The translations under genes and the position numbers were made by a program. Source: Thalia democratica (lineage: Eukaryota). From it: a DNA stretch of 64,000 bases. How positions within the stretch are numbered: the first letter of the stretch is position 1; the number at the start of each line of letters is the position of its first letter. Below the pieces are notes generated by a model, which saw only the letters and a program-made list of their open reading frames with translations, ran no database searches and was not told the origin of the DNA. The stretch is taken from the NCBI GenBank assembly GCA_965202585.1, contig OZ241828.1:41044001-41108000 (forward strand). Reading direction: 5' to 3'. Below, in pieces: positions 25,093-64,000 of this stretch.

Positions 25093-31839
<6,747 letters not shown>

Positions 31840-35700: not shown

Positions 35701-38700
35701 TATTAGTTTTTTTAGTTGTAAACATTGTTAGTAAACTTATGTTTTTATTAAAACCTATTAAAATTAAATATAGCGTAAAAGTTTCAATTAATTTAATCTA
35801 TAAATCTTACATAGTCATTTTTGTAATAGATTCTAAGTAAGTCATCTACAAAACTTTCAATTGCTTTCCACAAAGTCAGCGCATCATGAGCATACCAAAA
35901 ATTTGGGATTTTCTCAATCTTTAAACCTGCAAACAAATTCGATAGTTTAATTGATAAAATATAATGCAGATAGATACATTTTAAAAGCAGTATAGTTTTT
36001 TGTACAAAGGGTTTAGTTTTAAAGTAATTAAAACCTTGTTTAAATTTTTCTTTTAGTGTTAATTTATTATATTTAGACACAAAATAAAAACATTAAAAGA
36101 CCTAAAATAAAAATTTACAGATTTTGTACAATATTTTAAATTGTTTATGAATTAATTTTACATAAATTCATAAAACGATACTGATAAAAACTAAGCTAAA
36201 CTCAAAAAATATATAAATTAAACATTACTAATTGTAAAAAAAAACTTAATTCTTTTTTTCATTTTATTAACAAAACAATGTTTCACTTGTTTAGTTCAAA
36301 CAAGTGAAACATTGTTTTGTTAATCAAATGTTAAAATTTGAATTGATCATTCTCCTTATCATTAAATCGAGCACTTTTATTGTGATCTATAAAGTAAAAA
36401 GTACAGAATAAAGCTTAAAACTAAATGCTTGTTCAATGATCAATCTAATTTGAATAGACTAAACTAAAATAAATTCCAAAAACTTCTGAATAAAAATTGA
36501 CCATATAATTTTTTAGATTTAGTTATGTTTTTGGTTCCGAATTAAAACGTAATTGTAATTTTAATAAAGCTGTTAACTTTTTATGTAATCATTAGCATAA
36601 AAAATAATAACAGTTGTAGTTTATACACAGGTTGTTTAACTTTTCAAAACTAGTTACTTTAATCTTAAACATAATTTATTTTCCGCTAAAACAAATCTGA
36701 CCTTTTTCTATAATTATTCGAGGTATGTTCAACATTTCCCATTTGAAGCTCTTAAACATTTTCTTGATAAATGATTTTGCATCTAAAAATAAAGAAGAAT
36801 TAATTATTAAAAAAGTTTTCAAACTTAAGTATAATATAGTATCCACAAAAACTCTTTAAGTATACTTGTTTAGAGTCTTTACATAGAACTTTTCATTATT
36901 AAAAAACGAAAGTTTTACTTACTATTTATAGCAGGGTTTCTTAAAGTGGACCATATAGCCCCCTTAGGATCCATAAGCTGCATAGGGGTCAAAGGGGGAG
37001 TTAGTAGTTAAGGGGATGTAGAGGAGCACAAGGTCATAATTTGAAACTTACACTAAATACTCTAAAGTTCATGGTAAAGAGCAAAAAAGGTCTTATGCGT
37101 ATTTAAAGGCAGTTTTGAAACTTACACTAGGCCTGGGCTTAAGGTAACCATAAGCTGCAGAAGGGGCGAGCAAAAAAATAAATATTCATGAGTTGATAAT
37201 GAAGAAAAAAAAATCCTTAGGCGTATTTAACATTATTTTTTGAGAGAGGGGGCCATAGCTCTTTTAGTTTCTTCAAAGGAGGGGACACTTATGAAAAAAA
37301 AAATCGGAAATCCTGATTTATACAATGTTCAAGACTGAAAAATTCAACCAAACTTTTCGTTAGGTATAATACTGCATAGAAAAATCAAAATGTAGAAAGG
37401 GTTAGTGCTTGTCAAAGCTACGAATCGTAATATCGTTACAACAGATACACTAAGTTTTACGGGTGGGTGTATCTATTTTGCACGAGGGGACACTTTTGAA
37501 CGAAGACTTTTTTACCTTTTGGTAATAGTTTTTATTAGGTATACATTATTTTTGTATTACTGTTACCCCTACCGTTACCCTCGGTCGGTAATTTTTTTTT
37601 TTTTTTTAGTCTATGTTTTTTTCTAGTTTTTTATTCTTTTTTTTTTATTGTTTTATTTTTTATATATCATTTATACTATCACTGTTACCACTAACCCTTA
37701 CCCTCGGTCGGTAACTTTTTTTTGTCGTTTTCATTAACTAATCTTTTTTTTTTTTCTTTTTTTTTTACAAATTATTTTTTTTTTTTTAATATATATTTTT
37801 TACTCTCGTGCAAAAATGATCCTATGTCCAAAAGTGACCCATCATGCAAAAGTGACGCTCATGCAAAAGTGACTCGTTCCCAAGTTTTACCGGATGTATA
37901 CTTAAAATTTACGTATACTTGTGTTATAAATCGTTATTACTCTTTTTTTTAATGGAAACTTTATGTCATTTTTTTGTATGGTAACACCTAAAAGTAATTA
38001 AGTTTGAATAAAGTGTACATTTGTTTTAAAATAATTTTTATTTAATTTATTTTTTAACTAAAAATATTGTTCTACATGTTTTATTCACATTATTAAAAAA
38101 AGCTTAAATATAAAGAAATAAAGCAGCAAAAAAAGGAAGTTTAGTATCTAGTACATAATTTGTTGTACTTTGTGTTTTTATCTTAAAATAAAACAACCTA
38201 CTGTTACTTTTATAATTTTAAATTTTTATTTTATCATGTACCACTAAACTGAACCATTTTATTATCAACAATTGCCCATGACATACTATTCAACCTGGTT
38301 TCGCCCTCATTAGGACTCATCATGGGTACATAGTCATGGTGAATCGCCGGTCTAACCAAACGTGATTAATTAGCTTTGTATTGAAGCATCTATTTTTGGG
38401 TTAGTCGGGATAAACTAACGCAACTAAATTATCAAAACTAAAAGTATTATTTAAAACATTAAGAATTACCCACCAAGGAATAATTTTTAACTTGACCGGC
38501 ATTATTTTTTAACATATACACAGACACTTTATTTAAATTAAAAAATTATTAAAAAAAAAGTTAAAAAAAAGTTTTTAGACATTTTAACTTTGAAAAACAG
38601 GATGATTGTTTTATAGTTCAAGACAAATTGGAACGAAGGTAAAGTAATAAGCTTGTGTCGAACGTTTCTTACTTTTAACAGCGAAAACTGAAGTTTCCTA

Positions 38701-41700
38701 TAATAACATTAAAAAAAAGACTACAAAGTTAGATTGTTAACTTTGTTTTAAAAACTTGACCCGGTTAAACAAGTAAATAAGAAACAGATACAATAAAGTA
38801 GAAACGAATTTTTCTTCAAGTTTTTTTTTGGATTATTTAAAGCACTTCCACCTGTATTTTTTTCAATTTTTCAAAAATATGAAACTAAAAAAAATCTAGT
38901 TCATCGTTAAATATTAAGTAAAACTAAAAACGGTAATACAAAAAAAAAACTCTATTTAACTCTAATCCTATCAGAGAACTTTACCAAACTATTACTATTT
39001 TTAAACTCAATTTGTTATTAGTTATGATAGCAACTTTGTCGTAAAAGTTGTAGTAGGGTATTCGTTAAATATCATTTAACAAATACTCTACTACAAATAC
39101 ATTAAAAAAATTAAAATAAAAAACTTTACCGACGGACAAAGATCCAGCAACCTTTGACTTAGGTTGAAGTAAAATACTTCTTGCCATTGTATTGATCGAG
39201 AAAATAGTTTTGAGACTGGGTCTTAAAAGTTTATACACAGGATGGCATCTTGGAAGGCACCTAAAGAGTGCTAGTGCAATTGGTTCCATAATGCCATGTG
39301 TGTGCAAAAAGTGTGCTATCCACTGTTTAATTTATGTAAACTTATCGAACTTAAAATAAAAGAATCTTTAAAATTGTGTATAGTTTATTGAATATCAAAT
39401 AAAAAAGCAGTCAAAATATTTGGTCTTAGGACGACTAAATATCAAAGTATAAGCCTAAGTATCAAAAATAGCTTTAAGTTACCAACTCGGGGTAGCACAG
39501 ATCATTTGCATAAATAAAACAGTAGCAAACTTAAAAATTCAATTTTTTATAATAAAGTTATTAATTACTATACTTTAAAAGCAATTTATACATTTTGAAT
39601 GAAAAAATTAAACCCAAATTTTCAACTAATACAGCCACAACTAATGCAAATAAAAAAGATTTATAATAAAAATTATAAAGATACGTATGTTTATCAACTT
39701 AGAAGAAAATATTAATCAACGTCAATCTGTTTTCATGTTCAAACAACTTATACAGTTAATTACTTTTTAATTTGAAATACTTAATAGTTTTAAAGAACCA
39801 GTACCTAAAAATAACTATAGTTAAACTGGTCTCCTTTTTTATCGATTTTTATAATTATACTCTTATACTTTCTGTGAAATAACCGTGAAAATTGTTTTCT
39901 TTAGTTTTATTATTTTTAACTCAACCTTTTTTTAAAACATTTGTTTATTTATTTGAAAATGTTTACTTACCATGATTTTTGATCACTTTTAAACAGTTTT
40001 CGCTGATCTGTACAGTTTTAGCAATGAACAAACAATTTTTTACTCTTAATTACGTATCGATTGGTGAAAAGTATTTTAGTTTAGAAATAGTTAACTTTTA
40101 TTGATAGTACCTACTAATTACTATCACAAAGAGCAAACTAAAAACAACTTAATATTATCATTGTAAGACAGTTTAAACAAGAAACGTCTATTTCCTTGAA
40201 CAGCCAAGAATGATGCAACTAATAATATGTATCTAACACAAATAACATATTTCTAACATTTACTTTAAATTGCATACAACAAAATTATCTGAATAATATA
40301 TTGCTTTTATTACTTTTGAAAAAAAATCTTCAACGCCACTTTGTGATTTAATATAAAAATTTGGATTTTTTAGATAACATCATTAGTTTAAAATTACCAC
40401 AAATTAATTTTATAAAATCAAATTAAATATTTAATTTCACTTTAAAGCGTAACTAGTTTTAGCTCTACATTGTTTAGTAAGTATAAAAATAAACTAGAAT
40501 TCCGTACGAAAAATACAAAAAAAGAATTGTTTATTAATTTTAAATTGAAAGACAATAACTAACTCAAAGGTTTAGTTAAATGTTCATAAGGTATTTATTT
40601 CTTATTATTAGTTTTGTACTAATAGTTTTACCTCATGATAATTTGACAAGCTGCATCTATAGTGCATTTTAGCCAACATCCAATCAACTTGTGACTGACA
40701 ATCATCATGACCGGCAATATGCAAATACTGTCTATTACTCCGTTCTAATTGGATAGCAATAGGCACGAAATCGTCATTTTTGTTGATATATAAAAGAGCC
40801 ATTGCAGGGCAGCAGCTGGCCTTTTCGTTTGATGGTAAAGTTGTGTAAACAAGCTCATTTTCATCATCATTGTAAATAATGCTAAGATCAGAAATAAAAA
40901 CTAGTCCATTCTGTTGATAATTTTTTTATTAAACTAAAAAAAAAATCAAAAGTTTACTTAGCAAAACATAAAGATTATTTTTTGAAACTAACAAGGTTTT
41001 CTAAACTAACTTTTCGATCCTAATTTTTCTAATTCAGTATTTAGTCTTTAATTGAAAACTAGCGATGAAATAATTGTATAACTACAATAAAAGTAAATAA
41101 ATTTAAATTTCACCGAACAAATAATTTTTAGTATATCCACAATTTTACTAGTAAAAAATCATTTCTAGAAAAATTTTGTTTTTAAAACTAAATTTTATTA
41201 GTTGAAATGTAAAAAACAAGTTCATAGAGATGATTATTTTTTGGTATTATACACAAAAAATATAGCGAGCAATACAAATGTTTTTGTTTTATACTGATAA
41301 AAAGCGTTTAATATTATCAAAACTTATATTTCATAATAAGCAGTTAAAATATTTGATATCACTAAATATAACATTTTAAGCAGAAAACATTTTTTTCATT
41401 ATAGTTTTGCTATAAATCACATATTTTTACCTTGGTTTGGTGGTATCTTAAAAACTGTAGAAGTCGTCTTTTATGAAAGTTCTTTTCAAGTTTGTTTAAA
41501 AGGTGTTTAAGTTTCAGTTAAAAAGCTACTGGTAGATTAAAAATTAAATTAAGTAGTTAGTGCAGAGTTTGCCAGCCGTTTGTGAAACAAAACTTACTCA
41601 TGGGCCAAATATAAAAAAAGATATTTTGCTGGCCGTCAAAGTTTAGTGTAACAGCTTAACAAAAAACTGTGTTAACAACTAAACTATAGAAGACTTACAA

Positions 41701-44700
41701 AATTAAATTTTATCAGTTGAAATTAGTTTAAAGAATTTGAAATTAGATTCTTTTAAAAAGATAAGTTAAAAGCTAATTTTTTTTTGCAATAATCTTGCTG
41801 TAGTGTGCCAATACCTGCAGTAAATATTTACTCTAAATAACATATTAGAACAAATTATTAAAAAGAAATCAGTCACTAAACCAACTTTTAGAAGTATTTT
41901 TTTGATGAGTTTGAAAACTACTTATGTTATGGTATTAAAAATGTTAAACAAGTTTTTATTAAGTTGTTTACCAACTTTTAAAAATCTTATTGTAGCATCA
42001 AAATAAAGAATTTGAAACTAGTCTAAACCGTATAGTTTTTAACTTTTCTCCAAAATAAAATACAGGGTTATGTCGTAAATCAATTAAATAAATAAAAAAC
42101 AATTTTCGTGTTAAAGGTATTATCTCCTAAGAATGCTGTGATACACTTGTTTGCTTTTAAGTAAGTTTATATAAAGATTAGAGATTTTAGATTTATTTAA
42201 ACACTGACGAGGTCTTTGACCGAAACTTAGTTTTTAAAATAAATTCTTGTAAGAATAAATTCATTATTTCTTCTCTAGTAGCTGAGATTTCATGATTTGT
42301 TTTCTTAAAACCAAAACATAAAAAAAAAGAAAAGATTACAGTGTTGAAAAGTAGCACAAAAGTTTAACACAAGACTTTGAACTAAGTAGATGCGACTGTG
42401 AGCTTTAAATAATCTTTAAATAATCATCGTTTACAACACACTCTTTAAAATGTAAAACTGTTGTAGAGTTACTTTAAGTACAAAAAAAGTATTTAGTTCA
42501 ATGCAAACAATATACTTTAATCGCTGTTTAAAGTGTGACAAATCATGGTTTTTATCTACAAGGAGTACCTTTGTTGTTTAGACTCTTTTTTGTACCAAGA
42601 TAGTTCTTTTTATGACAATTTAGGTTAAAAAATGGTCAAAAAACTGACTGTAAAATGTTTTTTAAAGTAAAATGAAATATAAAAACTTAAAATACTCTTA
42701 TTTCTTCTTCTAAAGTTTTTCCTGTTCTAAGTAAATGTTTAACATCGTTGTTTGTTACATTAAAGTATGGAGGAATTTCATGGCAAGATTCAAACGCAAG
42801 TGGTAAAGTTCCATTAAGAAGCTGCCATCCTTGTCCTTCGTCTGTCTCCCAGCTTTAATATAAAGTATTATAATTAGTTTTCTATTTTGATTATGCAAGT
42901 AAATTTTGAAAATGATGATTCTTGTCAATTTAAATTAGATTATATAAAAATATTTCAAAAACTAAACTTACTTCTTTACATAGCTGTTTTGAATATCAGT
43001 GGTCAACATACAAGCGAATTTTTTGTAGTCATCAAGGGAGTTTATTGGATGCAGCAGTGCTATAATAAACAATTAAACTTGAAACTGTTTTAGATTAACT
43101 TACTTATGAAGAGAATATACTATAAAAGTTAACAATCAAAAATTTGTTCAGTGTTATTATAAAAAGTAATTTTATCAAACTTTTTAATGTATTCTTAAAA
43201 ATTGTGAACGTATTTTAATTATACTTTAAAGCAGTAAAATATATTATATGCTTTAACTTTTGTAAATAGTGTTTATCTTGATACAACCTATAAACCTCTT
43301 ATTTTTCCTATAGTTGTTGTAAGTCTGCTTTTCAAGACGTTGTGTATAAGATCTTTACCTCTTAAATGTCCTCGCTTAAATATTTTCGGCAATTTATCGC
43401 TGCTTTTTGCATTAACAAACCTACACATTCCTTGTGCATCACTATTGTGCTTTGTCCATTCAAAATCACACTTGTTTTTGTAAACCTCCCGTTTTCGAGC
43501 TTGTATGACAACTTTGTCAGTTTGTTTTTGAGGTATTATTGCTAAAAATTAAAGAAAAAAAATAATACGGTTGTTAAAAAATATCATATTTACAAAAATA
43601 TGCAGCTTGCAACATTGATACAACGAAAATTAAAAAGCTATTAATAAGCGACGGGTCTCTTGATAAGCAGACCGGTAAGCTTTATTAGGTTAGGGTTTTT
43701 CTTATTCAAAAATGCAAGGATAAGCGACTGCTCAACTTTAATGATACTATGTATATTATTCTGATCAAGTAAATTTAAACTATTAGTTGTAGTTGTATGT
43801 ATTTAAACAGCTATCATATATTATTAGTTTATGTTCTTCTTTTTCTTTTGGTATTTTTAAAATATTTTCTAACAAGGTTTTTTTAATTTAAGATTAAACA
43901 AAAACATGTCGATTAGTATATGTTGCCCTTATTGCATGAAACTCACTCAAGACTGTGACGATAGCTAATCAATAGATATCCAAGCTAAAGAAAAACTTCG
44001 GAAACAAGGTTATTAGTTGGACAAATAAGATTTATGTTTAGATAAAAGCAAACAAAATTAGTACACAGAACAAAAAAAAGAAATGATAGCTTTTTACTAA
44101 AGTTATTTGTTAATTAAGACAAAATATTAATAACCCTTTTATTTATAGTATGAAATGTAAAAATGATATTTCTTATAGTTAAATTTTATTGAACGACACA
44201 AAAGCGCTGAAAATATTTGGTCCTAAGACCTGGTGCACAAAAAACCATTTGGTTATCGAGTCACACACCACGGGTTTTAACCTCTTGTCCAGGACAACTA
44301 TAGGACAACTTATATTCTAAACTATTAGTAAAAATAAATGAAAGTCATTTATTATAAATAAACTCATGATAATAAAGTATTTGCTTAAAACTTGTTTAAA
44401 AACCTAAAAATACTAAAACTAGTTCTAAAATAAGACAAAAACTGACTAATACAACTATATTTTACACCAGATAACTTAACACTACATTTCCTAAACTTAT
44501 AAAATAATTACAAATTCAAAAAAACGTTTTTAGTAAACAGCTATATACCGTAAGTTTATGTATTGAAAAAAAAAACCTTACTTTTGAAGATTAATGTTCA
44601 TATTCACTATTTACTGTTAAGAACATCGAATATCTTTGTTTATTATGTTTTTTAACTTTTATTAGTTTTGTGACAAACTTATTCTCGGTAATACGTTTAA

Positions 44701-47700
44701 TTTATTTGTGTTTATATTTAGCGACAAACTTTAAATTTCATATACTGACAGTAAAATTATAGTTTTTTGTTTAAATTTTTTTAAATATCTTTAGCGAAAT
44801 TACAGTTAAAAATTAGTTAAATTGTTATACACTAACATTAAAAATAGTTGTTATATTATATTTTAATACAAAACTAAAATAACAAACTCCTTGATAAATT
44901 TTTTTCCAAGAAAAAAATATTTAATTAATGTAAAATGATAGTTTAAAATTGTGGCAAACAAATGAAAAAGAATGTTATTATAATGAAGGTACTTTTGTGT
45001 AAATTAATTTTATTTAATAGTTTAAACCTTTTCGATCATTGCAGTAAAGTTTATTAAAAATAATCTTTACCTTTTTTTATTTTTTCAAGTTCTACGTGTC
45101 AATGAGAATAAATTAGCTAAAATAATTAGAAGTTAGTTAGGCATAATTGTACACAATTTCCTTTGTGTCTATATACTATAAAACAGAAAAATGTTTGCAT
45201 ATAACTTTCAATTAACAACCAATTAAGATTACAGTGAATTCAACCATGCAAATGCTCATCAAGCCAAATATTTTAGATTTTGTTATTTTAAATAACTAAT
45301 GTTTTATATTGTATGCAATTAAAGTAAAAGTATTTTCTACATGTTTCATTATAATTGACAGCTTTTTATTTGAATTCCTTCCATTACTAACATCAATCTT
45401 ATTTTTTCAGCTACAAATTTTTCAATGCTTAATATTTAATTTTTTTGAAAACTTAAATTTAGCAGCTATACTGGTTTAATATATACAATTTAAAACAAAA
45501 GGACTTGAAGTTTTTTAAATACTTCACATTGTGTTACAATAAATACATAATAAACATTTTGTACTTAAATTTTATGTAAGTTTACTTATTTACTAATTCA
45601 TTTTCTAAAAAAAAGTAACGTAAATTAAAATAAATATATAAAAAAGCATGCTTAAAAATTTACTCTTCTCAAAAATACAAACTAAATAAAAACCTTTGAT
45701 TTCTAAGGATAAGTATTTTAATAACTCTGACTTGTGTAAGAAGTTTATTAAGAAAGTACTTCTTATTTATTTAAATCTGTTGAGTATGTTTATTATAAAG
45801 TTAATAAATATGTTAAACAGTTAATTGTTGTAATAAAAAACAAAAAATATAAGTAAGGACTAAGAGTTGTTAAGTTTAAAACACTTGTTTAAAAAGCACT
45901 ACATTTTATCTATTTTGGACAAACACACTAAATAGAAACAGGAGTTACCTTTTAAGGAAAACGTTTAAAGCAAAACTTAGTTTTAATAACACTTTTTAAC
46001 TCTATTAAATAATATTTAGCTCAAATATAAAACAAATTTTAGACCTCTTCCTTCAACAATGTCGCATTTGTCTGAAATGTAGCCATATACAGGGAAAAAT
46101 ACTTCCGAATCATTTTGACGTTTAACAGACACATAATCGCACAACCAGTCGTCTTTAACGTAGAATATTTCGCGTAATCCTTTTTCATTAATTATAAATT
46201 AAAAAAACGTATGATAAAAAGTTCATAAATAAATTTTTATACAATTAGATTTGAAGTATGAGTTGACCATTTGTTAGACTAATTCAAAACTAAACTGAAT
46301 AATAATATTCTTTAGGGAACAATAAACGCTTTAAACGAAATGTAAACAACAAAGCGTTTTAATTTTTGAAACTAAATACTATTCATATAATTTTCTGAAT
46401 AGTGTCGGCAAATAACACAGTTTTATTAAAAAAGTATTGATATGAAGCAAACTTATACTTTTGTATTTAAAAAGAAAATTAAATTACTAATGTGACAATT
46501 TTTTTCTTCAAACTTTTTTATCTCTCAACTTTTCAGGAGCAAAATTATTTTTAACTAACTTATTTTTACTAGTTTTGGAGTACCGATATCTTTTATTTTA
46601 ATGTTAAAAACGTCAGTCGAGCCGTTTTTAAAGTCATCATTAAATCTAATGTCCAGCAAAATCCATCCAGTCGTGTTTTCGACTAAATTTGTTCCAACTA
46701 GTTTTATATATACATCTGAGTCTGTCCCTGCATCTTTATACATTTCTGAGGTCTAATTGTATAACAAACGCATTTTCGTAAAATGATAACATTTGTATAT
46801 TAAAATATAAAGTTATTTTTAACTTTTATAAAGCATATTAGAAAAATACGATTCAAAATATGTAGTTTGTATTGTAATGTATTGAAAATGCATTAAATTT
46901 TCCCTGCTTACTATTTTTTTTAATTTATTTTTTTTCTCTTTTAGTTTTCATTAATTTTTTATACTACTTTATATTTTTTTACTCCTCTCATAGTCTTTAA
47001 TTCCATTGGTAATGCATTACAGTATAATTAACTAACTAACTTTCAAAGTTAAAAATTGCTTAAAATATTTTTACAGTTTCTAAAGTTTTGTAAACTTTAA
47101 GGACTTTAGAATAATTCCTTCGAATTTATAACAAGTATTTGAATAATCTATTTTTCATAAATCTATTTACAATGGATATGGATTTAAGTGCTTAATTTTT
47201 TATAACATTTAAAAAAGTACAATTTTTTCCTGTAAAAAGTAAAAATCTTGTTTTTTACTGATACTATAGTATAAAAACGTTTTATGAATTATAAAAATTA
47301 CTGTTTATAATTTTTTATTTTACATACTCAACACGCTAGTTTAAAACATTTTACAGAAGTATTTAAATAATGATAAAAGTTTAAAAGTATAAGCGGTGCT
47401 TAAAACCTTTTGAAATATTTGATAAAAAGACAGTTATTGTAAACGGAATTTATAAAAAAAAATGTAATTTAACTAAATACTAAATATTATCTTTTTTTTA
47501 TTAAACAATGATGAATATGATATTTAGTAGTTAAATTTTCATAATAGTTTTAAAACAAGCTACTACTATTACTTTTTCAATTAAATTACTGTGTGTGACA
47601 AATAACATTTTCTAAATTAGATTAGTTTATTGTTATAAAAAAGCTTAGTAAAAAAATAAACAGTTTAAATTTAAGATGCAATTAACTTTTTTACTAAACA

Positions 47701-47783
47701 AGTAAAAAGAATTTAGTTCCTCATAGTTTAAATAAAACAATTACCTTCACTATAATACGATAGTTAATACAACTTTTAGACAT
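32701..47783 (-). CDS. Lipoxygenase (PLAT domain + catalytic domain), complete, 686 aa (LOX-A)
   Basis: 14 GT-AG exons: 47783-47745, 46752-46560, 46179-46045, 43541-43296, 43059-42972, 42852-42696, 40910-40632, 39322-39130, 36782-36702, 35926-35811, 35474-35355, 34151-34017, 33196-33098, 32880-32701 (2061 nt). PLAT motif YRIIVKTSEMYKDAGTDSDVYIKL; iron-ligand motifs HEWIAHFLHTH and QHTAVNFGQ; C-terminus KNIAT. Confidence 0.92.
34851..35153. mobile_element. Degenerate hAT-type MITE
   Basis: Imperfect TIRs cagggatcggcaaactt and aagtctgcctactccta. No clear TSD. Confidence 0.4.
36932..37315. mobile_element. hAT Charlie-type MITE
   Basis: TIRs cagggtttc and gaaatcctg. 8-bp TSD atttatag / atttatac (7 of 8). 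Confidence 0.7.
37461..37881. mobile_element. MULE-like MITE, related family, reverse orientation
   Basis: Starts GGG and ends CCC. 9-bp TSD aagttttac (37452-37460, 37882-37890). Carries the reverse complement of the central ...accgagggtaacggtagggtaacagtaa motif. Lies in an intron of the minus-strand lipoxygenase. Confidence 0.7.
42191..42245 (+). ncRNA. Hammerhead-ribozyme-like core (probably a Penelope-like remnant)
   Basis: CTGACGA-GGTC-ttt-GACC-GAAAC: intact catalytic boxes and perfect helix II. Helices I and III are imperfect. Confidence 0.45.
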
Positions 47784-49269
47784 GCTTTTACTCTGTCAGT
47801 TCTTGAACACTTTTCCTTTACGTTTTTTTATCAATCTCAAAACTTTTAATATAGAAGAATAACCAAAGCAATTTTTTGTTTTACTAGAAGTTCACTACTA
47901 AGAATAATCATATTTTAAAGATAGCTAAAAATATATTTAAACAACTACGTTCTTCCTTATTTGCTTCCTTGTATATCATGACGGTTTACAATACTTTTGT
48001 ACAAGATGTAAAAACGAACTTATATACATTTTGAGCTTGTTTACAAAGCGTAAGTACTGTAAAGCATTAACTAAGTTACTTATTTTAGCAAAACACACTT
48101 TAAATTTTTAAATACATTTGTTGCCTTTTTTGTAATAAAAAATACTAAAACAAACAAATTGTTTCTATTGATATAACATTTTATGTAAAAGTAATTACAC
48201 TTTTTACTAAACTATTGTAGCTTTTAATCTGTTCATAAGTTATTTAGTTACTTAGACTTCGTAATGCTTTAGAGATTATTTAATAGTAGAATATTATATA
48301 AACAATAGTTGTAATATTTTTTTAAGTAGGCTAATAACCTTTATATAACAGTTACAAAAGATTTGTGTTTTTAAACCTCGAATTTTGTATTTTAAGTTAT
48401 TGCTACCGCTTTTTTCTCTAAAAGTCTTATCTACTTGAAGGAACTTATTATTGAATTTAGCAGTTTTTTTTTATTTAACAAAACTTTTAAAATTAAGAAA
48501 AATCGTTAGGTAATGTTAATGTAAACAAAAATATAGTTAGATCAAAAATCAAAATATACATATTTAAAAACTTGGCTTATTTTCTTAAAATTTCATTTAT
48601 ACAGTAGTTTCATTTATAAAAGATAAAATATGTATGTTTTGAGGTTATTCATACTAATATTCATAACTATTCATAAACTTCAATAAATGTAAAACTAGCA
48701 TTTCCGTAAAGTTAATTTATTATTCACTCTGAGTGGTTTAAGTAAATACTTTTGCACATGTATTTTTTTATAAAAAGGCATTTAGTTTTTTATAACTACT
48801 GTTAGTATAAAAAGTCAATTATCTACCTTGTTACTAAAAATAAATCTTTCTTAAAATGTCTATTAAAATATTGAAAAATAAAAGGTTCGACTACATAATT
48901 TAAAAAAAAGTAATTCAAGGTATGTTATTATTTTTGAAAATAATATTATATTGTTTACTAAACGAAAAAATTTGCTCAAAATTTGGTCCAAGGACCTAGT
49001 GTACGTAAAAACCTTTCGGTTATATACAATAAAAACATAATTACGACGATTAGACGTGTTTAATGCTCTTTTTAAAACATTTATTAAAAAAATCCTACGG
49101 ATAATAAAGCAAGCTTCTTTTTATTTGTACATTAATGTTTTTGTTACAAAAGTATAACTTTCTTAATAAAACTTTAAATTACCCGTTTATACAAAACGAC
49201 TTTTCAATTAAAAACTGTTGTTTTATTTATTAAACTCTAGTATTTCGTACTTGTTTTATGTTTCAAATA

Positions 49270-50363
49270 CAGTAACCTGCCTACTAGGTACGCACTTTGA
49301 ACACAGCGCAAAATTTGTATTTAATCGGCAGTGCGTACCTAACAAGGTTTGGTCTTCAATTTTACACATTAATCTTAATACAGACGTGTTAAAAGCCACA
49401 AAAGTTTACAAATGACTATTAAAACATAACACCCCAATATAAAAATTTTCATCATAAAAACTAAACATATTTGTTTAAAGTTATGATAAGTTTTGGATAT
49501 TTATTATATGTATTTATTTATAATCAACCCATAAAGGTTTTTTTTATCTAATTGTATTTAGTTATAACTTTAAAATTTTTATATATATAATTATTTAAAT
49601 AATAATTTTAGATTAATAAATACTTATGAAAACATTGATTATGTTTTTATCAAATTATGTTTATTCAAAATAGCTAATTTAGGGTTTAAAAATTTGTAAA
49701 ATATTAAGCAGCACAAAGTATCTGGTAAACCTAAACGACAATCTAAACTAATAGAGATTAGTTCAAAATCATCTAGTTCTAAATCAACCTCATTTGCAAA
49801 GTTCTTTCATTTCGTTCATATCGCTTTTTTACTTTTTTCACGTTTATGTTGCAAACATGGGATGTGCTAATAATAATTGCCCTGTTGACTAATTTTATTT
49901 ATTTAAATTTTTGATTTTCATAAACTTTTTACGTTTATTTTTCAACCATTGGATGCGCAAATGTTAATTACATTGTTCATTATTTTGGTATATCGAAATT
50001 TATATGATGTTTTCAGTTTTTTATTCCTATGTTATAATTATGGGGCATGCAAATTTAAATAGCACTGTTCGTTATTTTCGCTAAATAAGTAAACTGCAAC
50101 ATGCTTGTTTTAAGTATTGGATTTGATATACAATTCTAAGTTCATAACTTAATTTTTGGTTCCTTTAGATTTAATTTATTTGAATTTAATACAGTATAAC
50201 TATTTTTTTTAAATAATACTTTTGTGTTACTACTTTAAGTTATGTTTTTTTTCAATTCATATCAAAATAAAAATAAATTTTAACACAGCGTTTTTTGGCT
50301 AAAAGTGCGTATCATACTGGCAGTATGTACCAAGGAATTGCGTATCTAGGTGGAAGGTTACTT
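49270..50363. mobile_element. pogo/Tigger-type degenerate element in the lipoxygenase intergenic region
   Basis: ta|cagtaacctgcctactaggtacgc at the left and gcgtatctaggtggaaggttact at the right are inverted. A related end fragment is at ~21850-21900. Confidence 0.5.
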
Positions 50364-51108
50364 CAGAAGGTTAAGTTTTCAACCACTTTAAGCTTACCTA
50401 CATACTTACGTTTAAATTTACGCACGTGTGTAGTATACATACTTTAAATACTTTTAACTAATGAAATGAACCATAGCATATTCATATTTTCACCTTTTTA
50501 AACAACCTTTATCCAGATATTCTTGTTTTGAAATATTATCTTAAATGTTTGTTACAACTACTTTTATAACATTAAAACATATGTACATGAGGGGTAATAA
50601 GCCTTTTTCAGTATGTAACACATTTTCAGAAAAAAAAACGAGAAGAGGAAAAAACGTATTCACTACTATTAGCAAAAAGGAACAGAGGAATACAATTTTA
50701 TTACTAGCAATGAACAAGCTTGAAACTTTTATAAACTAATAGAAATATAGTTTTAATTAATCAACCTTTTTTTACTGCTATTTAGTTATTTTTGAATCCA
50801 GTAACCATTTGACATCTTTAAAAGGTCAATTTTTTTTCGTTTAAGTTTTTTTTTTCAATAAAATGCTAACTGCAGATAAGTTTATGCAGCGTAACTTGAA
50901 ATCAATAAATTTTTATTTGTCAAACCAAAGCTTAAGTAGGGCTTGATTATAAAGTGTTATAGCAAAGTTTTATATACTGTAATGAAAAATTAATCAGTCA
51001 TACATAATCATAAAAAATGAGCCGACATTATGTATAGCAAATCTTATTGAAACTGATTTTACAATTTTTAATAAAAGATTATTACTTGTTTTAAACACAT
51101 GTAATTGT

Positions 51109-51351
51109 ACAGCTTTTTTCCGGTGCATAACTTATTTATAAAATATAACAGAATACATTTCATTTTCTTTAAACTTATTTTAGTATTTTCGTAGTAAGGC
51201 TCATCAGAAATATTTTCTTACTGAATTGGAATGAATACAAATTAGTTTGTATTCATTCCAATTCAGTAAGAAACGGTTTCTGATGAGCCTTACTACGAAT
51301 GTACTAAAATAAATTTAAAGAAAATGAAATGTATTCTGTTATATTTTTTAA
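51109..51351. mobile_element. Palindromic micro-insertion with 12-bp TSD (probable Penelope-like retro-fragment)
   Basis: TSD acatgtaattgt at 51097-51108 and 51352-51363. Inverted arms of ~102 bp (51140-51241, 51246-51347) with a 4-nt loop. Each arm carries CTGATGAG-ccttacta-CGAA. Confidence 0.7.
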
Positions 51352-51939
51352 ACATGTAATTGTGATCACAGTTGCTTTTGTTTTTACAACAATTTGTACT
51401 TAATGTTTAAATTTTAGTCGGAAAATTTTTATAATACATCTATATATTAAGTGCTTTTATGTTTTATGTTTGTAAAATATGACTTAATCGTTTTTTTTTA
51501 ATTTATAGTTCATAAATTCTGCTTTAAACCATAAAAAAATTTAATTGTTAGAAATACTATAAGGGAATTTATTGATAAAAATTGTATGGAATAGGTATTA
51601 TTTAGTCTGTAAAAGGTACTAGCTTCTTATATTTTAAAATTATCTTGTACTTACATTTTCATTTTAAAGTGAAGAAAATCTTATATAAACAAGTTTTGTA
51701 TTGTTTTAAAAAAAGTACAAAAAGACTTTGATAATGAGTAATATAGTAACAATAGTACATTTTTACGTGGTAAAATTTAAAGTAAATTAAAAATATCATG
51801 TTGCTTTTTAAACATTGAAAACTTTTAGATATGTTTATAAAATTATAATAGCTTATAGAATTTTAAATGATTGTTTTTTTAATTTTATTGTATTTTTTTT
51901 TAGTTTAATAGAGAAGTATTAATTTGCTTGGTTTTCGAA

Positions 51940-54900
51940 ATGAGTAGTAACACAACTACTTATAAAATCACGGTAAAAGTGAGTTCAAAGTTATATACTT
52001 TATTATATAAATGACAAAAGTGGTTTTTTAAATCAATTAAAATTCTCTCTGTTAGCTTTTTGCTGTTATAAAATTAAAGTAGTATAAGTAATAATAGCTA
52101 ATATTTATGTTGTGCTAATTGTAAAAACATGTGTTTTTGGGTAGCATATTTACTCGTTTGTTATCAAGTAACTTTATAAGGTGACCTTTTAGAAAAACGT
52201 TAAAACAATTGCTTTAAAAAATGTTTTAAGTTTCTATAAAGAAGAAAAAAGTGTATATCTGTAATTTACTTTTTGTCTGACTAATTTTTTTTAATTTTAC
52301 GTTGCATCACCAACGAGTTACAAAACTAAATAAAAAAAATTCTGTATTTTCTTACAAACTAGAAATTTATACTTATGGTGAAATAGATAGTTATATCCGT
52401 TAGACCTTATAAAAAACAGTATATGTAATTCAGTTTTTTTGTTTAAGAAATAAGTACTATCAAGGAATAAGTTTATTGTAGCAGTTTCCTAGTTTGGTAT
52501 ATAATGATATTAGTCATACTTTATGCTTAATATTTCAAGTTTTAATCGAGATTTTTATCTTTAACTTTATTCAACTAAACTGTGCGATAACTATAGTTAC
52601 AATTTCAAAAAACATAGCGGCTAACTATTTGTGTTTTACGAATTATTTAAATTAGTTATTAAGTACAAAACATCTTTACAAACTTATTTTAGACTTCTGA
52701 CGCTTACAGAGATGCGGGCACAAATTCGTATGTTTATATAAAATTAATTGGTTCCAATGGTGATAACGTAAAAACTGAATGGCATCTTTTGGATATTTTA
52801 CTCAGAGATGATTTTCAATTAGGAGCAACTGATGTTTTTTATGTAAAGATGAAAGATGTTGGGATACCTAAAATCATTAAGATACGTTGGTCTTTTGCAT
52901 TATTAAGTTTATTGATCTTTATTTTTTTTTGTTTGTAAAAAACTACATAATTCTAAAATAGTTTTTCTTACAATTTTACAAACACATATAAAGGTTTATA
53001 TGTATGCACTTTAGTTTTACGTAACTAAATAACTTCTTTATTTAAAAATATCAATAGTACAAAAAATAATTTGTTTCTTGAAAAGAAAGTAAATTTTTTA
53101 ACATAAAACTGTTTTTTATTATTTTATTATTTATTAAGGTCTAGTAACAATTATAATATTTTTTAATACTTATAAACTATGATATTTAATCGTACTTACA
53201 AAATTTTTGCAAATTAGTGAACAAAAAAAAACAGTAGTTTAGTGTTTTATAATCATAAAAGTATTTAAAATTTTGGTAAAAGTTTTTTACCACAGCAATG
53301 CATGAAAAGCCTAACATTTGAGTTTAGTTGTTTATTGCACAATACTCAATTTCAATTTTTCTTTACAATTTAAAAGTTTATTAAAAAAAATTATATACAA
53401 ATCTTAAAGTTTAAAGCTGTTTAATCCTTTTTATATTTAAAAAGTCACGTCAACATCACTCCTTTTGAATAGCAAACTTATTATATTTTTTTCGAAGTAA
53501 AGGAAAAAAATACATCTATAAAAAAAAAAGCAACGCACTATTTACACGAATTTATAGTAAAGTAATTTTCAAGCAGGAGATTCTACGCTAAAAGGGCAAT
53601 ATCGTTCTGTTTGAAAAAAAAGTTATTTGATTAAAATATGCCAGCAATTTTTTTCTTATAGAATGTTTTTTTTTAACTCGGGTTTAATGCATCCAAAAGT
53701 AAAAAAAAAGTACTTTAGGAATAGACGATTGGCTTTACGTAAGAGATGAATGGTTGTGTGAGACAATATCTGTTACACGTGATGATATCACAGTTTTGTT
53801 TCCGGTTTATTCATACATTGACCACGAGTACGAAATAATGGATGGTATAGGTTGGTATACGAAATTAAAAACATAGATTTAAAATCTGACTAACTTAATA
53901 ATTTAATATTTTATAAGATAATTTTTTACTTCAAAAATCGCGAAGATAAATTTGTCTTGTTTTTTTCTAAGCTTTAGTTAATATAATTATGAAAAATATG
54001 CATCAAAGTTTAAAGCTATCTTTAACTACGCTATTTGACTCTGGTAAAACATGAATAGCTTAAACAATAGTATAAACTAGATATATATAACTTCTACTTT
54101 GTGTTCAATTTTAACCTCATGTTTAAAAGCATAATTGAAAAAACGAATGTTTGAGAACTTTTTAAAGAAAGTATACTCAAATGCAATACGATATAAGAGG
54201 TCATTATTTATGCCCCATCTTCTCTGAATGCTTTTAGAATTAGTATAGCACTTTGATTGATTGAAAATCCCAAGACCAAATAAAGTTTTAAGAACATTTT
54301 GAAAACTATGTGCTACTATTAAATTTTTTTTTAGTATTTCATTATTGTGGTATTGAAACAAAAAGCATTAAAAACCTAATTTCTACTTGACGGGAATAAA
54401 TTTCTATCGAATTTAAGCAAAAAGTTTTTTATTTATATAAAAAACTATTTTAAATAAAACCAATAATTTTAACAATTTTTTAAATCAGCTAAACTTCCTC
54501 AACACGAAGCCTGTAGACGCCGCATTAAAGCTAGGTATAAGGAAATTCAAAGAAACAAAAATGAGTTCCAATGGGTAGATAGAAAAGAAGCTTCTAGCGG
54601 AGTCTGTAGGTATGTTAAAGCATCAGGTTACGAGAACTTGCCTCGTATATTCAAGCGTACTTTGTCAAGAGAAAGAGGTTTAGACGGTCATAGGTTTTTA
54701 GGACAACTGAATGCAGTAATTGCTCGAGTTGAAGGTATGCTATTTATAATTGAAGTTTATTTAAAACGATTAGAATGAATAAATGACCATCATAAAAAAA
54801 ACAAAAAACTTTAATTATGAAAATTTTATTATGTAAATTTTATTATAAAATTTTTAGCAGTATTAATTTTTTGAAAAAAAACTACAATTGTATGTTGATG

Positions 54901-57900
54901 AAAATATTTTTTTCAAAGAAAAGAAAACGATTTGTTGATTATAGTGTTATAATGAAAGTTATCTCATCATGTTATAAGTAATATAGAATAATAAGTTTTA
55001 TAATAACTAATTTGTATCATCGTACACTGTACTGTTATTAAAAAGTATATATTTTCACAAGCTAAAGTTTTAAATTTTATAAATAACTATTTTTTATTTG
55101 TTTTTATAGTTTTATTAAAACGATAAGTAATAAATTTAAGTTTTGTTCATTTCTATTGTTATTCTTGATTTTTTTAGTTTTTCTTTTTTTTTACTTGTAT
55201 AGTACATATGATTACATATTTTTTAATATCAACATTTAGATCAAAAATAAAACACCAAAGATTTTTTAACTAAAAAATCATACTAACAGTTTTCCATGTT
55301 TTTTGAAGCTTCTATTAGAACTTATTATGTTTTAGTTTTTATTTATACATTATTTCACTAAAGTTTGGTTTCTTTTTAATAATGAATAAAAAAAGCTTAT
55401 GCTGGTGCATCAAAGACAACAAAACAATTTGAAAAAACTTGCTGCTAAAACTTATTTAATAATTAATATTAAAATTTGAACAAATTTTATTTATTAAGAT
55501 AATTATTAAAGGTAATTTCTTGCAGAAACTTTTCAAAGTTTGTATCTTCCTTATATTTTTACTGTTGAAAAGTTTTGTTCTAAAAATAAAGTTTATCTAT
55601 AAAAGCAAGTTTATTTTAAAGATATAAATGTTTATAGAGGTTGTTAGCCATATTGTACATTTAAATTTTTAAATAGAACATATGCACGTGTAAGCTTGTA
55701 TATGTATATATAAAACGGTGTAATCGTGCTCAAAAAACAATGTTTTACGTAAGTTTTATTAGTACTATACATATAATATACTTTATACAAACTAGTTTAT
55801 ACAAAGTTAATTTTATACTAGTTTCAAAAATAATTATAATTCATTTTAATAACTACTTCAAAACTAGTAAACTTTCTTGTTAACCTATAAACATTATAAT
55901 GTAAATAGAAACAAAGGCATATGTATATAAATTTTCCCCATATGGAGATATGATAAATACGTTCTTTTGGTAAAAGTTACTTAAATAACATTGTTTTGCT
56001 TAAATAACAGCTCATCAGATTGAAAAAAAGTTTCACAAATAACTAAACAAGCTTTTTTATGTTTCATGATTTGTTCTTTTAGCGAAACGGTGTTACTAAA
56101 ATAAAGTTCAACAAAATATTGCTGTTAATATATAAAAATTAGCATTAATAATAGTATGTTATACAAAATGAATTTTTAACTCAAAAATAATGTTTATAAA
56201 CTATGTGTAATAATATCCTATAATAGACTATTTGTTTTGTAATTGTTATTGATCTACATAAAGTATAACATTAATAACGTCTTACAACTTTTTTATTTAA
56301 AGATGATGCACATATTATACCTCAAAATATTACATTTAATATCAATAATTAAACTAACTTGATAACAACCAAAACAATAATACGAAGCAATGGTTATAAT
56401 GTTGAGAAAATTTATGTTTTGTACAAATACAAGTTAACAGTTTTAGCATAACATTCTGTTAGTGATTTATCTTACAGTTATGTATTTTAGTTATGACTAA
56501 AAATCGTTTTGTTTAATATTCATTAATGTTAAAAAAGTAGTTTAAAACTAAAAGTTTTATAATTAGTATTTTGTTTTAAACAGCATTTTAATTTGTATTT
56601 TAATTTAAACAGCATGCTTTTAATAATATACAGTTTTAAATAAAAAACATATAATGCTAAGCCTTTAGAACTTTTAAAATATCTAAGTGACGCTAGGAAA
56701 ATTCATAACTAAAATATTTTAATTTTTACTTTTTTAATGTATTAGTATAGAAGATTCAAATGAACATTACATTGAAAACGATAACAATTTTTTTTAAGTA
56801 ATTTAATAATATTTATCAACAAAATACTATTATAAATGTATGTAGCTCAATGAACTTAATTTTACACAGTTTTTAATAAACTGTATTTGTTTTAGCTGTT
56901 TTTAAGCCTATCAAATCGCTGGAATGTTATTGGAAATTTTCACAAATGTTGCTGCCTGAGAAATTGGAATATGTAAAAGAGTAAGCTTTAAGTTTTGTTT
57001 CAAACATTAATTTTTAAAAATATTTTATTATTAAAAATGACATTCAATTAAATTAGGTACTTTATAAAAATCGTATTAGTAATTGCATTTATTACTAATC
57101 AGAATTTATCTTTTAGTTAAGCTACTTCATATGCTATTCTACAAGTTATGTCATATCTTTTTTTTTTAATAATTGGAAAATTTAGCTCAACAAACTTTTT
57201 TTTTCTCAATTGTTATGTTCTAGTAAGAAATTGAAAATAAATAATTAATGCACTTTTAAAATCTTAGTTTATTGCTTAAAAAAATATTGGAACAGGTCAA
57301 AATTGCACGAGGTTACTTAATTGCAAGATGGGAATAAATTGCACGAGAACAAGTTTGCACGAGAGCACAAAATTGCACGAAGATACTTTTGCACGAAGAC
57401 AAATTTTCACGAGGGAACAAAATTACACGAAGACAATTACACGAAGACTCCAATGGTCAGTTTTGCACGAGTTACACTTTTGCACAAGAGTAAAAAAAAA
57501 AACAAAAAAACAGAAAATAAAAATAAACAGAAAAAAAACTAAAAGATAAATTAATAACAAAAAAAAAAAATTACTGACCGAGAATTAGGGATAACAGTGA
57601 TAGTAAAATAAAAACTAATAAAAATTATTATCAAAAAAAAAACATTAATTAAAAAAAAAAGCTACCGTCCGAGGGTAAGGGTTAGGGGTAACAGTGAAAG
57701 TTAAAAACTAAAAAAAAGTATTAGTAAAAAAATCAACCCGTGCAAAAATTTATCCATCAAAAATTGTCTGCTCGTGCAAAAGTGTCTTCGTGCAAAAGTA
57801 TCTTCTTGCAATTTCATCCCCTCGTGGAAAAGTGTCTTTGTCCCCTCGTGCAATTTTGTACGCTGGTGCAAGTTTAACAGCTACCCAAAAAATATAGTTA

Positions 57901-60900
57901 TACTAACTAAAAAAATTCGTGCTAATTTCACATTATTCCAAGTGATGTTTTACACAAAAAGTCGAAGTTCTACACGTAAAATTAAGTAGTCTAAAATTAC
58001 TTTTTTTTTTTTTTCGTTTCTACAAAGTTTATTAAAGTATTATTAAAGTTTATATTGACACCCAATCAATTTCTATTTTAGACTTTTATTTTATTATTTT
58101 TAAAAGATGAAGTACAATAATGTTTTAAATCAGGTTTTGTAATTCGGTTAATGGCTTGTAGTTTTAAATTGTTTTTAGTCAAAGACAATTTTTAAACCAC
58201 TAGACCTCAATTAAGAATTAAACTATTACTAAAATTATAAATAATATTTTAATACAAATCGTAAGTTATCGTTTAAAAAAAAATATGTAAAAAGTTTTTA
58301 TTATAATTTTTTTGGTCTGCTAAAATAGCTAAATATATCTAACATAATATATAAAGATTGAAAGATATTAAAAAGTCATTCAAAGAAACAAAAATGTTTT
58401 TTTTTGTAGAACTTCCTTTATTTATTTATAGTTAATTATTTTTTGTAAAACTATTTACACATACTTAAATGTTGTTTTCAAATGATAAACATGTTTAAAA
58501 GAAGTTCTGTATATATAAAAAATTATTGATGAAGTCGATGAACTTTTTTATTAAGTATAATTAGATTTTTTTTAAATTATGAAATCCAGAAAAGTAGAAA
58601 ATAAAATTCGAATTTTAATTTATATAAATGCTGTTTAGGAAATTAAAGTTGACTTGTTTTATATGAGAAATCCTTAAAGTAACTTTAATAAAAACTTTTT
58701 AGCAGTTAAAAATGTTATTATAAGTAAAAGATGTTTTATAAAAATTTTGTTTGTAATATCAAAAAAGTAGACAGGTGATGGTAAAAACTTATCAGTTTTA
58801 TTTTACTTTTTATTTCCATAATTGTTTATCTATATACAGTTTGTAAGAGTCGAAAAATAGTTTCAAAGTACTTGCTTATCATTAGTTTTTAAAAGTTCTC
58901 TAAAAATTAATTTTAGTTTGAAGTTTAATATTACTAGCATAAGCTGGTTCTGAAAGCGTGAGACTGTTGCTTTATAAATCTAGTTTAACACTGTGTTTGA
59001 TGCTTTTTAAATAAAATATGAACAAACAAAAATTTTTAACCTTTTACGTTTTATTGTTCAAAAATCAAAAGCAAATACAAAACCAATGTATCTTAACTTG
59101 TATAGTATTTGAGTTTAAAAATGTTAATTACCAAATATTTAAGCTGGGAGACAGACGAAGGACAAGGGTGGCAACTTCTTAATGGAACTTTACCACTTGC
59201 GTTTGAATCTTGCCATGAAATTCCTCCATACTTTAATGTAACAAACAACGATGTTAAACATTTACTTAGAACAGGAAAAACTTTAGAAGAAGAAATGAAA
59301 GTAAATAATTAAAACATATAATAATTATATGCTATTCGAAAATAAATTACTTTTTCAGGAAGAAAAACTTAAGTTTAAAAATAAATGTTAAAAATACTAA
59401 CTTTACTCGTTGACGGTAACTTAAGTTTTTATATATTAAGATGTTTTGAGCAGTTTTTATTGATAATAATTTCCAGTAAAGCCAATATAAACTTTACTAA
59501 CTACTAGCAAACAAATTTTCTAAATAAAATCAAAAGATAAATCATAAAAATTTATCATTTGAAAAAAATAATGTGAAAACAGTTTATAAGAAAAATTTCT
59601 TAAATATTATTCTGTATAAGTTTGTGACATATTCATTATCAGAAAAAACTAAAATAACTATCTTTGACATTGAAACAACTTAATTTTAAATAGTATTAAG
59701 ACTCGATAAAGAATTCGAAGTACTTTAACTTTTTTTTTAGTTCAATAGTAAATGTCAGAATTTTTTATTTGTTTATACCCGATTTTGATTAACATACTTT
59801 TTTAGACCGGAAGAGTATTCATATCCGATTTGAGCAAGATTTACTTTGATAATAAAGATCTTGTTTACACAACTTTACCGTCAAAAAACGAGGCCAGGTG
59901 CTGCCCTGCAATGGCTCTTTTATATATCAACAAAAATGACGACTTTGTGCCTATTGCTATCCAATTAGAACGAAGTAATAGACAGTATTTGCATATTGCC
60001 GGTCATGATGATTGTCAATCACAAGTTGATTGGATGTTGGCTAAAATGCACTATAGATGCAGCTTGTCAAGCTATCATGAGGTACTTACATAATTTAATA
60101 AAATCTATTTTTCGTGTTCTGTTTGTAAACTACTACAAGATAATGTTATAATCCGTTCAACTAGTCTTTTTTTTAAGTTCTTATATTTTACTTTAGCCTT
60201 TTAATCTTTAGATGAAAATATGCAACTTATTTAAAAAATAATTTGTAAATGTAGATTTGCTTCTCAAATAACAATGTTCAAGAATATATATATAAGTTTG
60301 GTATAAGTAAAATATTAAATATACCTTCAATAACAGGTTTACTTTAGATAGATATTTAATTTAACTGCCTAATGAATAAAAAAATATTAGTATTATAAAA
60401 ATAAATTTTGGCAGCAGATCCGACTTTGTTAGAGTTTATTAACTTTAATTCATAAGATTTATGCTTAAAATGTAAGCAGCTAGATGTTAGGTGCATTGTA
60501 GGGTGGGAAATGTGTGGAAAAAGTTAGTTCTTTGCAGGCCGGAGCACTTCATTAAATTCACAAAAATTTACTCGATTGTTCAATTAATTTTGACAAAGTA
60601 CTTATTCTATATAACTTTTTTCACCATAACTAATGTAAGCTTCAAGTTCAGTAAATTGTACCTAAGACTTTATTTTGCTCTTCATTTCAATCTCAGAATA
60701 TCTAGTGTAAGGTACAAACATTTGTTTAGCGGGCCATTTACATGCTCGAGGTCTGCAGTTTTTCTTTTCGCAACCGGTTAAGTTTCTTTAAAGCTAAGAT
60801 TCCACTTCAGGTTTTTTAAGCATTGGCGGGCCGATCATACTTCGTGGGTCGTACGGCCCCTAGTATTAAACTTAGAATAACTTTGTCTGTTTTGTCATGG

Positions 60901-63900: not shown

Positions 63901-64000
63901 TTTGAAATTTTAGGGCTCGATGGAAAGAATTTTACACAGTTTACCTAACCCTAGTCAGTCGGTATTGGCTATTGCGATGACGTATGGTTTGTCACAGCTA
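51940..64000 (+). CDS. Lipoxygenase (PLAT + catalytic domain), paralog of LOX-A, runs off the window end (LOX-B)
   Basis: Exons 51940-51978, 52693-52885, 53719-53850, 54489-54734, 56896-56980, 59144-59300, 59806-60081, 61104-61296, 61969-62049, 62185-62300, 63403-63522, 63599-63733, 63914->64000. Same intron positions and phases as LOX-A. Motifs YKITVKTSDAYRDAGT, HEWVYHFLHCH, QHTAVNFGQ. Confidence 0.92.
57288..57886. mobile_element. MULE-like MITE
   Basis: Same ttgcacga subrepeat arms and central motif (twice). 9-bp TSD aaaaaatat (57279-57287, 57887-57895). Lies in an intron of the plus-strand lipoxygenase. Confidence 0.75.
60500..60862. mobile_element. Probable degenerate hAT-type MITE in a LOX-B intron
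   Basis: GC-richer island with gcgggcc subterminal motifs typical of hAT MITEs. TIR and TSD not resolved. Confidence 0.35.

Follow-up and report, generated by a model that had tools for sequence, protein, structure and literature searches.

Two exon-sized islands of near-identity point to gene conversion between old head-to-head lipoxygenase genes of Thalia democratica

Two lipoxygenase genes, which we name LOX-A and LOX-B, lie head to head in a 64,000-nucleotide stretch of the Thalia democratica genome (GenBank assembly GCA_965202585.1, contig OZ241828.1, positions 41,044,001 to 41,108,000 of the forward strand; hereafter the window, with position 1 as its first letter). The pair occupies the window from 32.7 kb to its end. 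Exon 6 and the last 183 nt of exon 7 are nearly identical in the two genes, and the other exons are heavily diverged. We are highly confident that these two islands were homogenised by interlocus gene conversion between LOX-A and LOX-B, and that this happened after LOX-B split from its ortholog in a related species (P0045). The window is AT-rich (G+C 26%) and belongs to a 101-Mb contig of an 802-Mb assembly.

A head-to-head pair of lipoxygenase genes

We built models of both genes from tblastx and tblastn blocks joined at GT-AG junctions, with exon 1 placed by a motif scan. The resulting features are as follows.

LOX-A, 32701..47783, (-) strand: 14 exons, ~686 codons in an open frame, stop codon after exon 14
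LOX-B, 51940..64000 in the window, (+) strand: 14 exons, open frame; gene end at 64371, just beyond the window
Exon 1 (motif scan): LOX-A 47783-47745 (-); LOX-B 51940-51978 (+)
Exon 2: LOX-A 46752-46560 (-); LOX-B 52693-52885 (+)
Exon 3: LOX-A 46179-46045 (-); LOX-B 53719-53850 (+)
Exon 4: LOX-A 43541-43296 (-); LOX-B 54489-54734 (+)
Exon 5: LOX-A 43059-42972 (-); LOX-B 56896-56980 (+)
Exon 6, probable conversion island 1: LOX-A 42852-42696 (-); LOX-B 59144-59300 (+), with a LOX-A-identical core at 59175-59296
Exon 7: LOX-A 40910-40632 (-); LOX-B 59806-60081 (+)
Exon 7, 5' 93 nt, intermediate divergence: LOX-A 40815-40910 (-); LOX-B 59806-59898 (+)
Exon 7, 3' 183 nt, probable conversion island 2: LOX-A 40632-40814 (-); LOX-B 59899-60081 (+)
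Exon 8, apparently unconverted, with iron-ligand histidines and predicted stereo-determinant: LOX-A 39322-39130 (-); LOX-B 61104-61296 (+)
Exon 9: LOX-A 36782-36702 (-); LOX-B 61969-62049 (+)
Exon 10: LOX-A 35926-35811 (-); LOX-B 62185-62300 (+)
Exon 11: LOX-A 35474-35355 (-); LOX-B 63403-63522 (+)
Exon 12: LOX-A 34151-34017 (-); LOX-B 63599-63733 (+)
Exon 13: LOX-A 33196-33098 (-); LOX-B 63914-64012 (+)
Exon 14: LOX-A 32880-32704 (-); LOX-B 64192-64368 (+)

The intron phases of the two 14-exon genes are identical. A marine metatranscriptome (run X7, record 25) contributes a spliced contig of 2285 nt that matches LOX-B exons 5-10 with borders within 1-3 nt of our model, so that the limits of these exons are observed and go beyond prediction. 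Both proteins match Pfam PF00305 above the curated cut-off, and both combine an N-terminal PLAT domain with a lipoxygenase catalytic domain. Cnidarian 11R-LOX (3VF1) and 8R-LOX (3FG1) and human ALOX15B (4NRE) share this architecture; the predicted enzymes LOX-A and LOX-B are only ~30-50% identical to these solved ones. Their nearest named protein relatives are ascidian, and the DNA itself also turns up in marine metagenomes.

The genome holds ~17 lipoxygenase loci, and we built a lipoxygenase family tree on 3-kb locus pieces. In a tree of the non-island exons, LOX-A and LOX-B are sisters on long branches (0.38 and 0.29; support 91/86).

Lipoxygenases usually have a C-terminal isoleucine, whose carboxylate is a ligand of the iron. 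This Ile is present in LOX-B and P0045, whereas LOX-A ends in Thr (32704-32712). In the relatives P0009 and P0032 the last residue is Ala and Ser, respectively, so that this position varies in the clade.

The start codons of the two genes are ~4.2 kb apart and point away from each other (47745-51978). The spacer between them may be a shared bidirectional control region; blastn found no similarity between the LOX-A and LOX-B 5' flanks that make it up.

Two islands of near-identity in exons 6 and 7

Manual counts in a first-pass annotation of the window had singled out exons 6 and 7 as unusually similar, and a coordinate-level comparison shows these counts to be exact. Exon 6 differs between LOX-A and LOX-B at 4 of 157 nt (59168, 59174, 59297 and 59299 in LOX-B), leaving a run of 122 identical bases between the differing sites, and 12 differences fall within the final 222 nt of exon 7 (59860-60081). 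Within exon 7 we found a sharp inner border at 59898/59899, with 75% identity upstream (93 nt, including a 3-nt indel) and 96.7% downstream (183 nt). A blastn comparison of the two genes returns two strong matches only (97.0% over 169 nt and 89.8% over 274 nt), with the remaining exons at 65-74% or undetected. Aligned exon by exon, all exons other than 6 and 7 are 51-77% identical.

The similarity stops at the introns, which the first-pass annotation had described as unalignable. The 100-nt intron flanks of exons 6 and 7 align no better than shuffled sequence (z -0.7 to +1.4), and sensitive alignment of introns 5-7 between the two genes yielded AT-rich noise only. The same annotation had described the identity as bounded by exon homology; this is correct for three of the four borders, and the fourth falls inside exon 7.

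To separate protein conservation from shared history, we calculated the proportions of synonymous (pS) and nonsynonymous (pN) differences between LOX-A and LOX-B by the Nei-Gojobori method, per exon or per partition. Synonymous divergence is far from uniform: pS is 0.06 in exon 6, 0.24 in exon 7 and 0.58-1.0 in every other exon. Island 2 has a pS of 0.15 and a pN of 0.007. Pooled, the islands reach a pS of 0.11, compared with a saturated 0.73 in the rest of the gene (Fisher test on synonymous sites, P = 5e-21). Exon 12, put forward earlier as an internal control for purifying selection on the protein, serves that purpose well, with 82% protein identity yet a pS of 0.79. In a run test of the GENECONV type, the longest identical runs were 122, 52, 44 and 44 nt, as against a mean maximum of 18 and a largest value of 44 in 10,000 permutations of the differences (P < 1e-4).

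The first 93 nt (31 codons) of exon 7 are intermediate. Their pS of 0.38 lies below that of the rest of the gene (Fisher P = 0.004), and their pN is 0.21 between LOX-A and LOX-B, mostly through changes on the A branch, and 0.08 between LOX-B and the ortholog. These small numbers suggest that the segment is probably an eroded part of island 2 that later escaped conversion, an escape possibly aided by amino-acid change in LOX-A.

A LOX-B ortholog shows a normal substitution rate in the islands

P0045, the LOX-B ortholog of a related species, is encoded by an mRNA contig of 2 kb assembled from a marine metatranscriptome, and it has 80.6% identity to LOX-B and 57% to LOX-A. We aligned LOX-A, LOX-B, P0045 and an outgroup, P0042, as a codon quartet. 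Between LOX-A and LOX-B, pS is 0.11 in the islands and 0.73 in the rest; between LOX-A and P0045 it is 0.52 and 0.76; and between LOX-B and P0045 it is 0.45 in both partitions. As LOX-B and its ortholog have diverged equally inside and outside the islands, the substitution rate of the islands is normal.

Phylogenetically informative sites switch their preferred topology between the partitions. Within the islands, 13 sites pair LOX-A with LOX-B (against P0045 and P0042), 2 pair LOX-B with P0045 and none pairs LOX-A with P0045. In the rest of the gene the corresponding numbers are 19, 109 and 17. Maximum-likelihood trees agree, grouping LOX-A with LOX-B in the islands (support 83/82) and LOX-B with P0045 elsewhere (98/98). 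Paralogs that group in the islands and orthologs that group elsewhere are the signature of interlocus conversion after speciation. Taken together, the drop in synonymous divergence confined to the islands, the change of tree topology and the unchanged island substitution rate bear out the earlier proposal of gene conversion between the inverted copies.

An explanation by selection would hold that a splicing signal, an RNA structure or an embedded element has preserved exons 6 and 7 at the nucleotide level in both copies since the duplication. Identity that ends at splice sites is what such an exon-confined constraint would produce. However, the equal pS of 0.45 between LOX-B and P0045 in the two partitions speaks against it, as does a closer LOX-B mRNA (from X7), which differs from the window at 7/431 nt in exons 6-7 and at 7/479 nt in exons 5 and 8-10. 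One island border also lies inside exon 7, and few exons of the family are less conserved than exon 7 (40-42% identity with P0004, 35% with the nearest paralog clade, C-F). We regard this explanation as extremely unlikely.

Several searches were run with exon 7 sequence. As a query on its own against a 90%-cluster protein collection it gave zero matches, its peptides gave 142 pattern matches and zero relatives among JGI metagenome contigs, and the 57-residue island peptide, looked up for exact identity, returned no record.

Two features of the aligned sequences are recorded here in their own right. The P0045 mRNA is without 36 codons that correspond to exon 5 and the first 23 nt of exon 6 (window 56896-59166); the gap is an in-frame skip to an AG within exon 6, either an isoform or specific to that lineage. 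Exon 7 carries a five-residue insertion ahead of a conserved DW motif (40680-40700 and 60010-60030, inside island 2), which is present in LOX-A, LOX-B and P0045 and absent from P0042 and P0004.

Independent contigs reproduce both islands

We examined the assembly with data from outside it, namely Logan contigs of four public runs covering LOX-B: X1 (organism A), X3 (organism B), X4 (a marine metagenome) and X7 (the metatranscriptome above). X1 matches the window near-perfectly, and its record 3 runs from intron 5 across the exon 6 sites diagnostic of LOX-B with 0 differences. In X4, which represents a lineage ~6% diverged, a single contig (record 18) extends from intron 5 through exon 6 and intron 6 into exon 7, most of which it covers; the gene arrangement of this lineage is that of the window, without inversion. 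X3, ~1-2% diverged, yields a separate contig of exactly 59175-59296 at 2.8x the depth of its flanks. Both X1 and X3 contain a contig of exactly 59899-60070, limited by the A/B differences at 59898 and 60071, which in X3 has ~1.8x the flanking depth. The raised X3 depth on cores identical in LOX-A and LOX-B is as expected for sequence present twice.

These contigs bear on whether the reads of one copy overwrote the other during assembly or polishing. At position 60018 the window has A, and all four runs, P0045 and LOX-A have G; this base is either a private allele or an assembly error at one position, so variation or error of that size does exist in the window. An artefact on the scale of the islands is a different matter, and we consider its probability negligible: LOX-B exons 6 and 7 recur, attached to their own unique introns, in three data sets of DNA and one of RNA, the ~6% diverged X4 lineage crosses the whole stretch in one contig, and polishing is unable to lift an identity of 65% to 97%. 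The three DNA runs and the spliced mRNA contig thus confirm both the assembly and the exon borders, which answers the concern about misassembly raised in the first-pass annotation.

X3 may hold a trace of later exchange. Its 59899-60070 contig has the LOX-A letters at 59943, 59946 and 59973, where X1, X4, X7 and P0045 have the LOX-B letters. The depth of this contig suggests that it stands for both copies, in which case organism B would have had a newer A-to-B tract of 31-172 nt in exon 7. Bubble removal by the assembler could mimic this pattern; we lean slightly towards the tract.

The exon carrying the stereo-determinant stays distinct

On the chain of coral 8R-LOX (3FG1), exon 6 corresponds to residues 229-280 and the exon 7 tract to residues ~323-383, with exon 8 directly next in the gene models. 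Exon 8 of both genes has the His motifs of the iron ligands, aligned to those of solved lipoxygenases, and the two copies show 59% protein identity and a pS of 0.77. At the aligned stereo-determinant, LOX-A carries Ala, in line with the Ala site of human ALOX15B (4NRE), the solved structure that matches it best; LOX-B carries Gly, and among solved structures its closest match is coral 11R-lipoxygenase (3VF1), with Gly aligned. Coffa and Brash reportedly linked Ala at this site to S products and Gly to R products. The alignments indicate that exon 8, with this predicted Ala/Gly stereo-determinant, escaped conversion and that the converted region ends one exon earlier. The first-pass annotation had likewise called the specificity exon distinct, and synonymous saturation across exon 8 agrees. 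Its further description of the pair as a natural domain-swap experiment goes too far, since the ~113 shared codons amount to less than a domain and the enzyme functions are predicted ones. What the locus would offer is a predicted pair of enzymes with ~113 codons of the N-terminal catalytic domain in common and a difference at the stereo-determinant.

A model for exon-sized conversion islands

LOX-A and LOX-B are old inverted duplicates, mostly saturated at synonymous sites and with introns diverged past alignment, in which non-allelic conversion on the same chromosome very probably made two short islands (157 nt and 183 nt) alike. Conversion requires homology on both sides of a tract. This flanking homology has been lost in the introns, which would explain why three of the four island borders fall at splice sites: the tracts would have been unable to enter unalignable introns, and with introns this long, exon sequence is the only substrate left. 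In our model the islands would then lose ground at their edges, and the 5' third of exon 7 looks like a recent escapee; once a stretch had diverged sufficiently, conversion there would end for good.

Exon-exact borders could also arise if a spliced transcript had served as the donor in complementary DNA (cDNA)-templated repair, and three of the four borders do coincide with exon ends. However, intron 6 is retained in both genes (1785 nt in LOX-A, 505 nt in LOX-B), and in the mRNA the two islands are parted by the 93 diverged bases of exon 7. A homology-limited genomic donor gives the same borders without the extra step, and we find the cDNA route improbable.

At the differences between LOX-A and LOX-B within the islands, LOX-B has the ortholog's letter in 8/10 cases, and in the island tree the branch leading to LOX-B is of zero length. 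The shared island sequence is therefore B-type, or the copies have evolved in concert since before the split from P0045. The first-pass annotation had called the conversion recent, which holds in a relative sense only: most island differences between LOX-A and LOX-B predate the split of the sampled close lineages.

Several observations weigh against conversion as we describe it. The island tree is built on 306 nt and is only moderately supported (83/82). The island differences are one-sided, with 8 on the A branch and 0-1 on the B branch, so that one clean event followed by clock-like decay fits poorly. Two protein searches found no LOX-A ortholog in other species, and the conversion may have been a few B-to-A events or a continuous two-way exchange. 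The possible extra tract in X3 is read from contig depth alone, and bubble removal could produce it. Finally, G+C at third codon positions (GC3) is not raised in the islands: exons 6-7 have a GC3 of 0.19-0.38, which lies inside the span of values for the remaining exons, and a signature of GC-biased conversion is thus absent. A raised GC3 is frequent in gene conversion and is not required.

One further role for the islands is conceivable, although we give it little credence. The two inverted exon islands may double as crossover sites, where a reciprocal exchange in exon 6 or 7 would flip the ~16-kb segment between the LOX-A and LOX-B copies. If so, the promoter, PLAT domain and exons 1-5 would be swapped between the Ala-type and Gly-type cores with the frames staying open, a reversible natural chimera switch and a possible reason why the islands persist.

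Relation to known cases of paralog conversion

Gene conversion between neighbouring duplicates, to which we attribute the islands, is a well-known and ordinary process; the gene pair is new and the mechanism is not. Conversion between paralogs is usually seen in exons, as introns fall below the homology threshold, and adjacent inverted paralogs do undergo it (PMC3966223). The C. elegans hsp16-48 modules and hsp70-7/hsp70-8 resemble the LOX pair in being neighbouring head-to-head duplicates on one chromosome, with tracts of tens to hundreds of bases in a mosaic of homogenised and diverged sequence (PMC3966223). Caenorhabditis tracts often include tiny introns (PMC3966223), whereas the LOX tracts are confined to exons and the LOX introns are kilobases long and unalignable. 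With synonymous divergence saturated outside the islands, the LOX pair is also much older than the hsp pairs. In the tandem HMA4 paralogues (bioRxiv 10.1101/2025.10.29.685298), conversion likewise keeps some parts alike and others diverge, possibly where divergent selection opposes conversion. The HMA4 pair is young and largely alignable, in contrast to the LOX pair, which retains only its 157- and 183-nt islands.

Human RHD/RHCE and CYP21A2/CYP21A1P are further mosaics of paralog conversion in young, largely alignable pairs. In large palindromes such as those of the human Y chromosome, inverted arms are corrected against each other and stay near-identical over long non-coding stretches. The LOX genes are also inverted copies on one chromosome, but their non-coding homology is gone, and by analogy the pair could at most be the last stage of a palindrome-like structure. 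Arm-to-arm conversion of a palindrome was considered for the locus itself and set aside, the introns and the intergenic spacer being without homology.

The LOX pair offers a clean example of conversion between old duplicates shrinking to exon-sized islands, with divergence graded from the saturation of most exons through the intermediate 5' part of exon 7 to the two recent islands. As a practical consequence, trees and dating of these lipoxygenases must omit exons 6-7; otherwise the duplication will seem younger than it is.

Other head-to-head pairs and a repeat in intron 5

The genome contains two other head-to-head lipoxygenase pairs, at C2:24.01/24.03 Mb and C2:61.24/61.26 Mb. The former is younger, with introns that align at 68-76% and an exon pS of 0.06-0.31. 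Its exons 6-7 lie at the low end of pS (0.10-0.12), numbers too small to call the same pattern.

Intron 5 of LOX-B contains a very abundant repeat (57248-58043), with related pieces at ~31290-31730 and ~37540-37900. Its summed contig depth is 10^3 to 10^4x that of single-copy flanks, and many of its joints are to the opposite strand, a pattern as for a short element with inverted ends.

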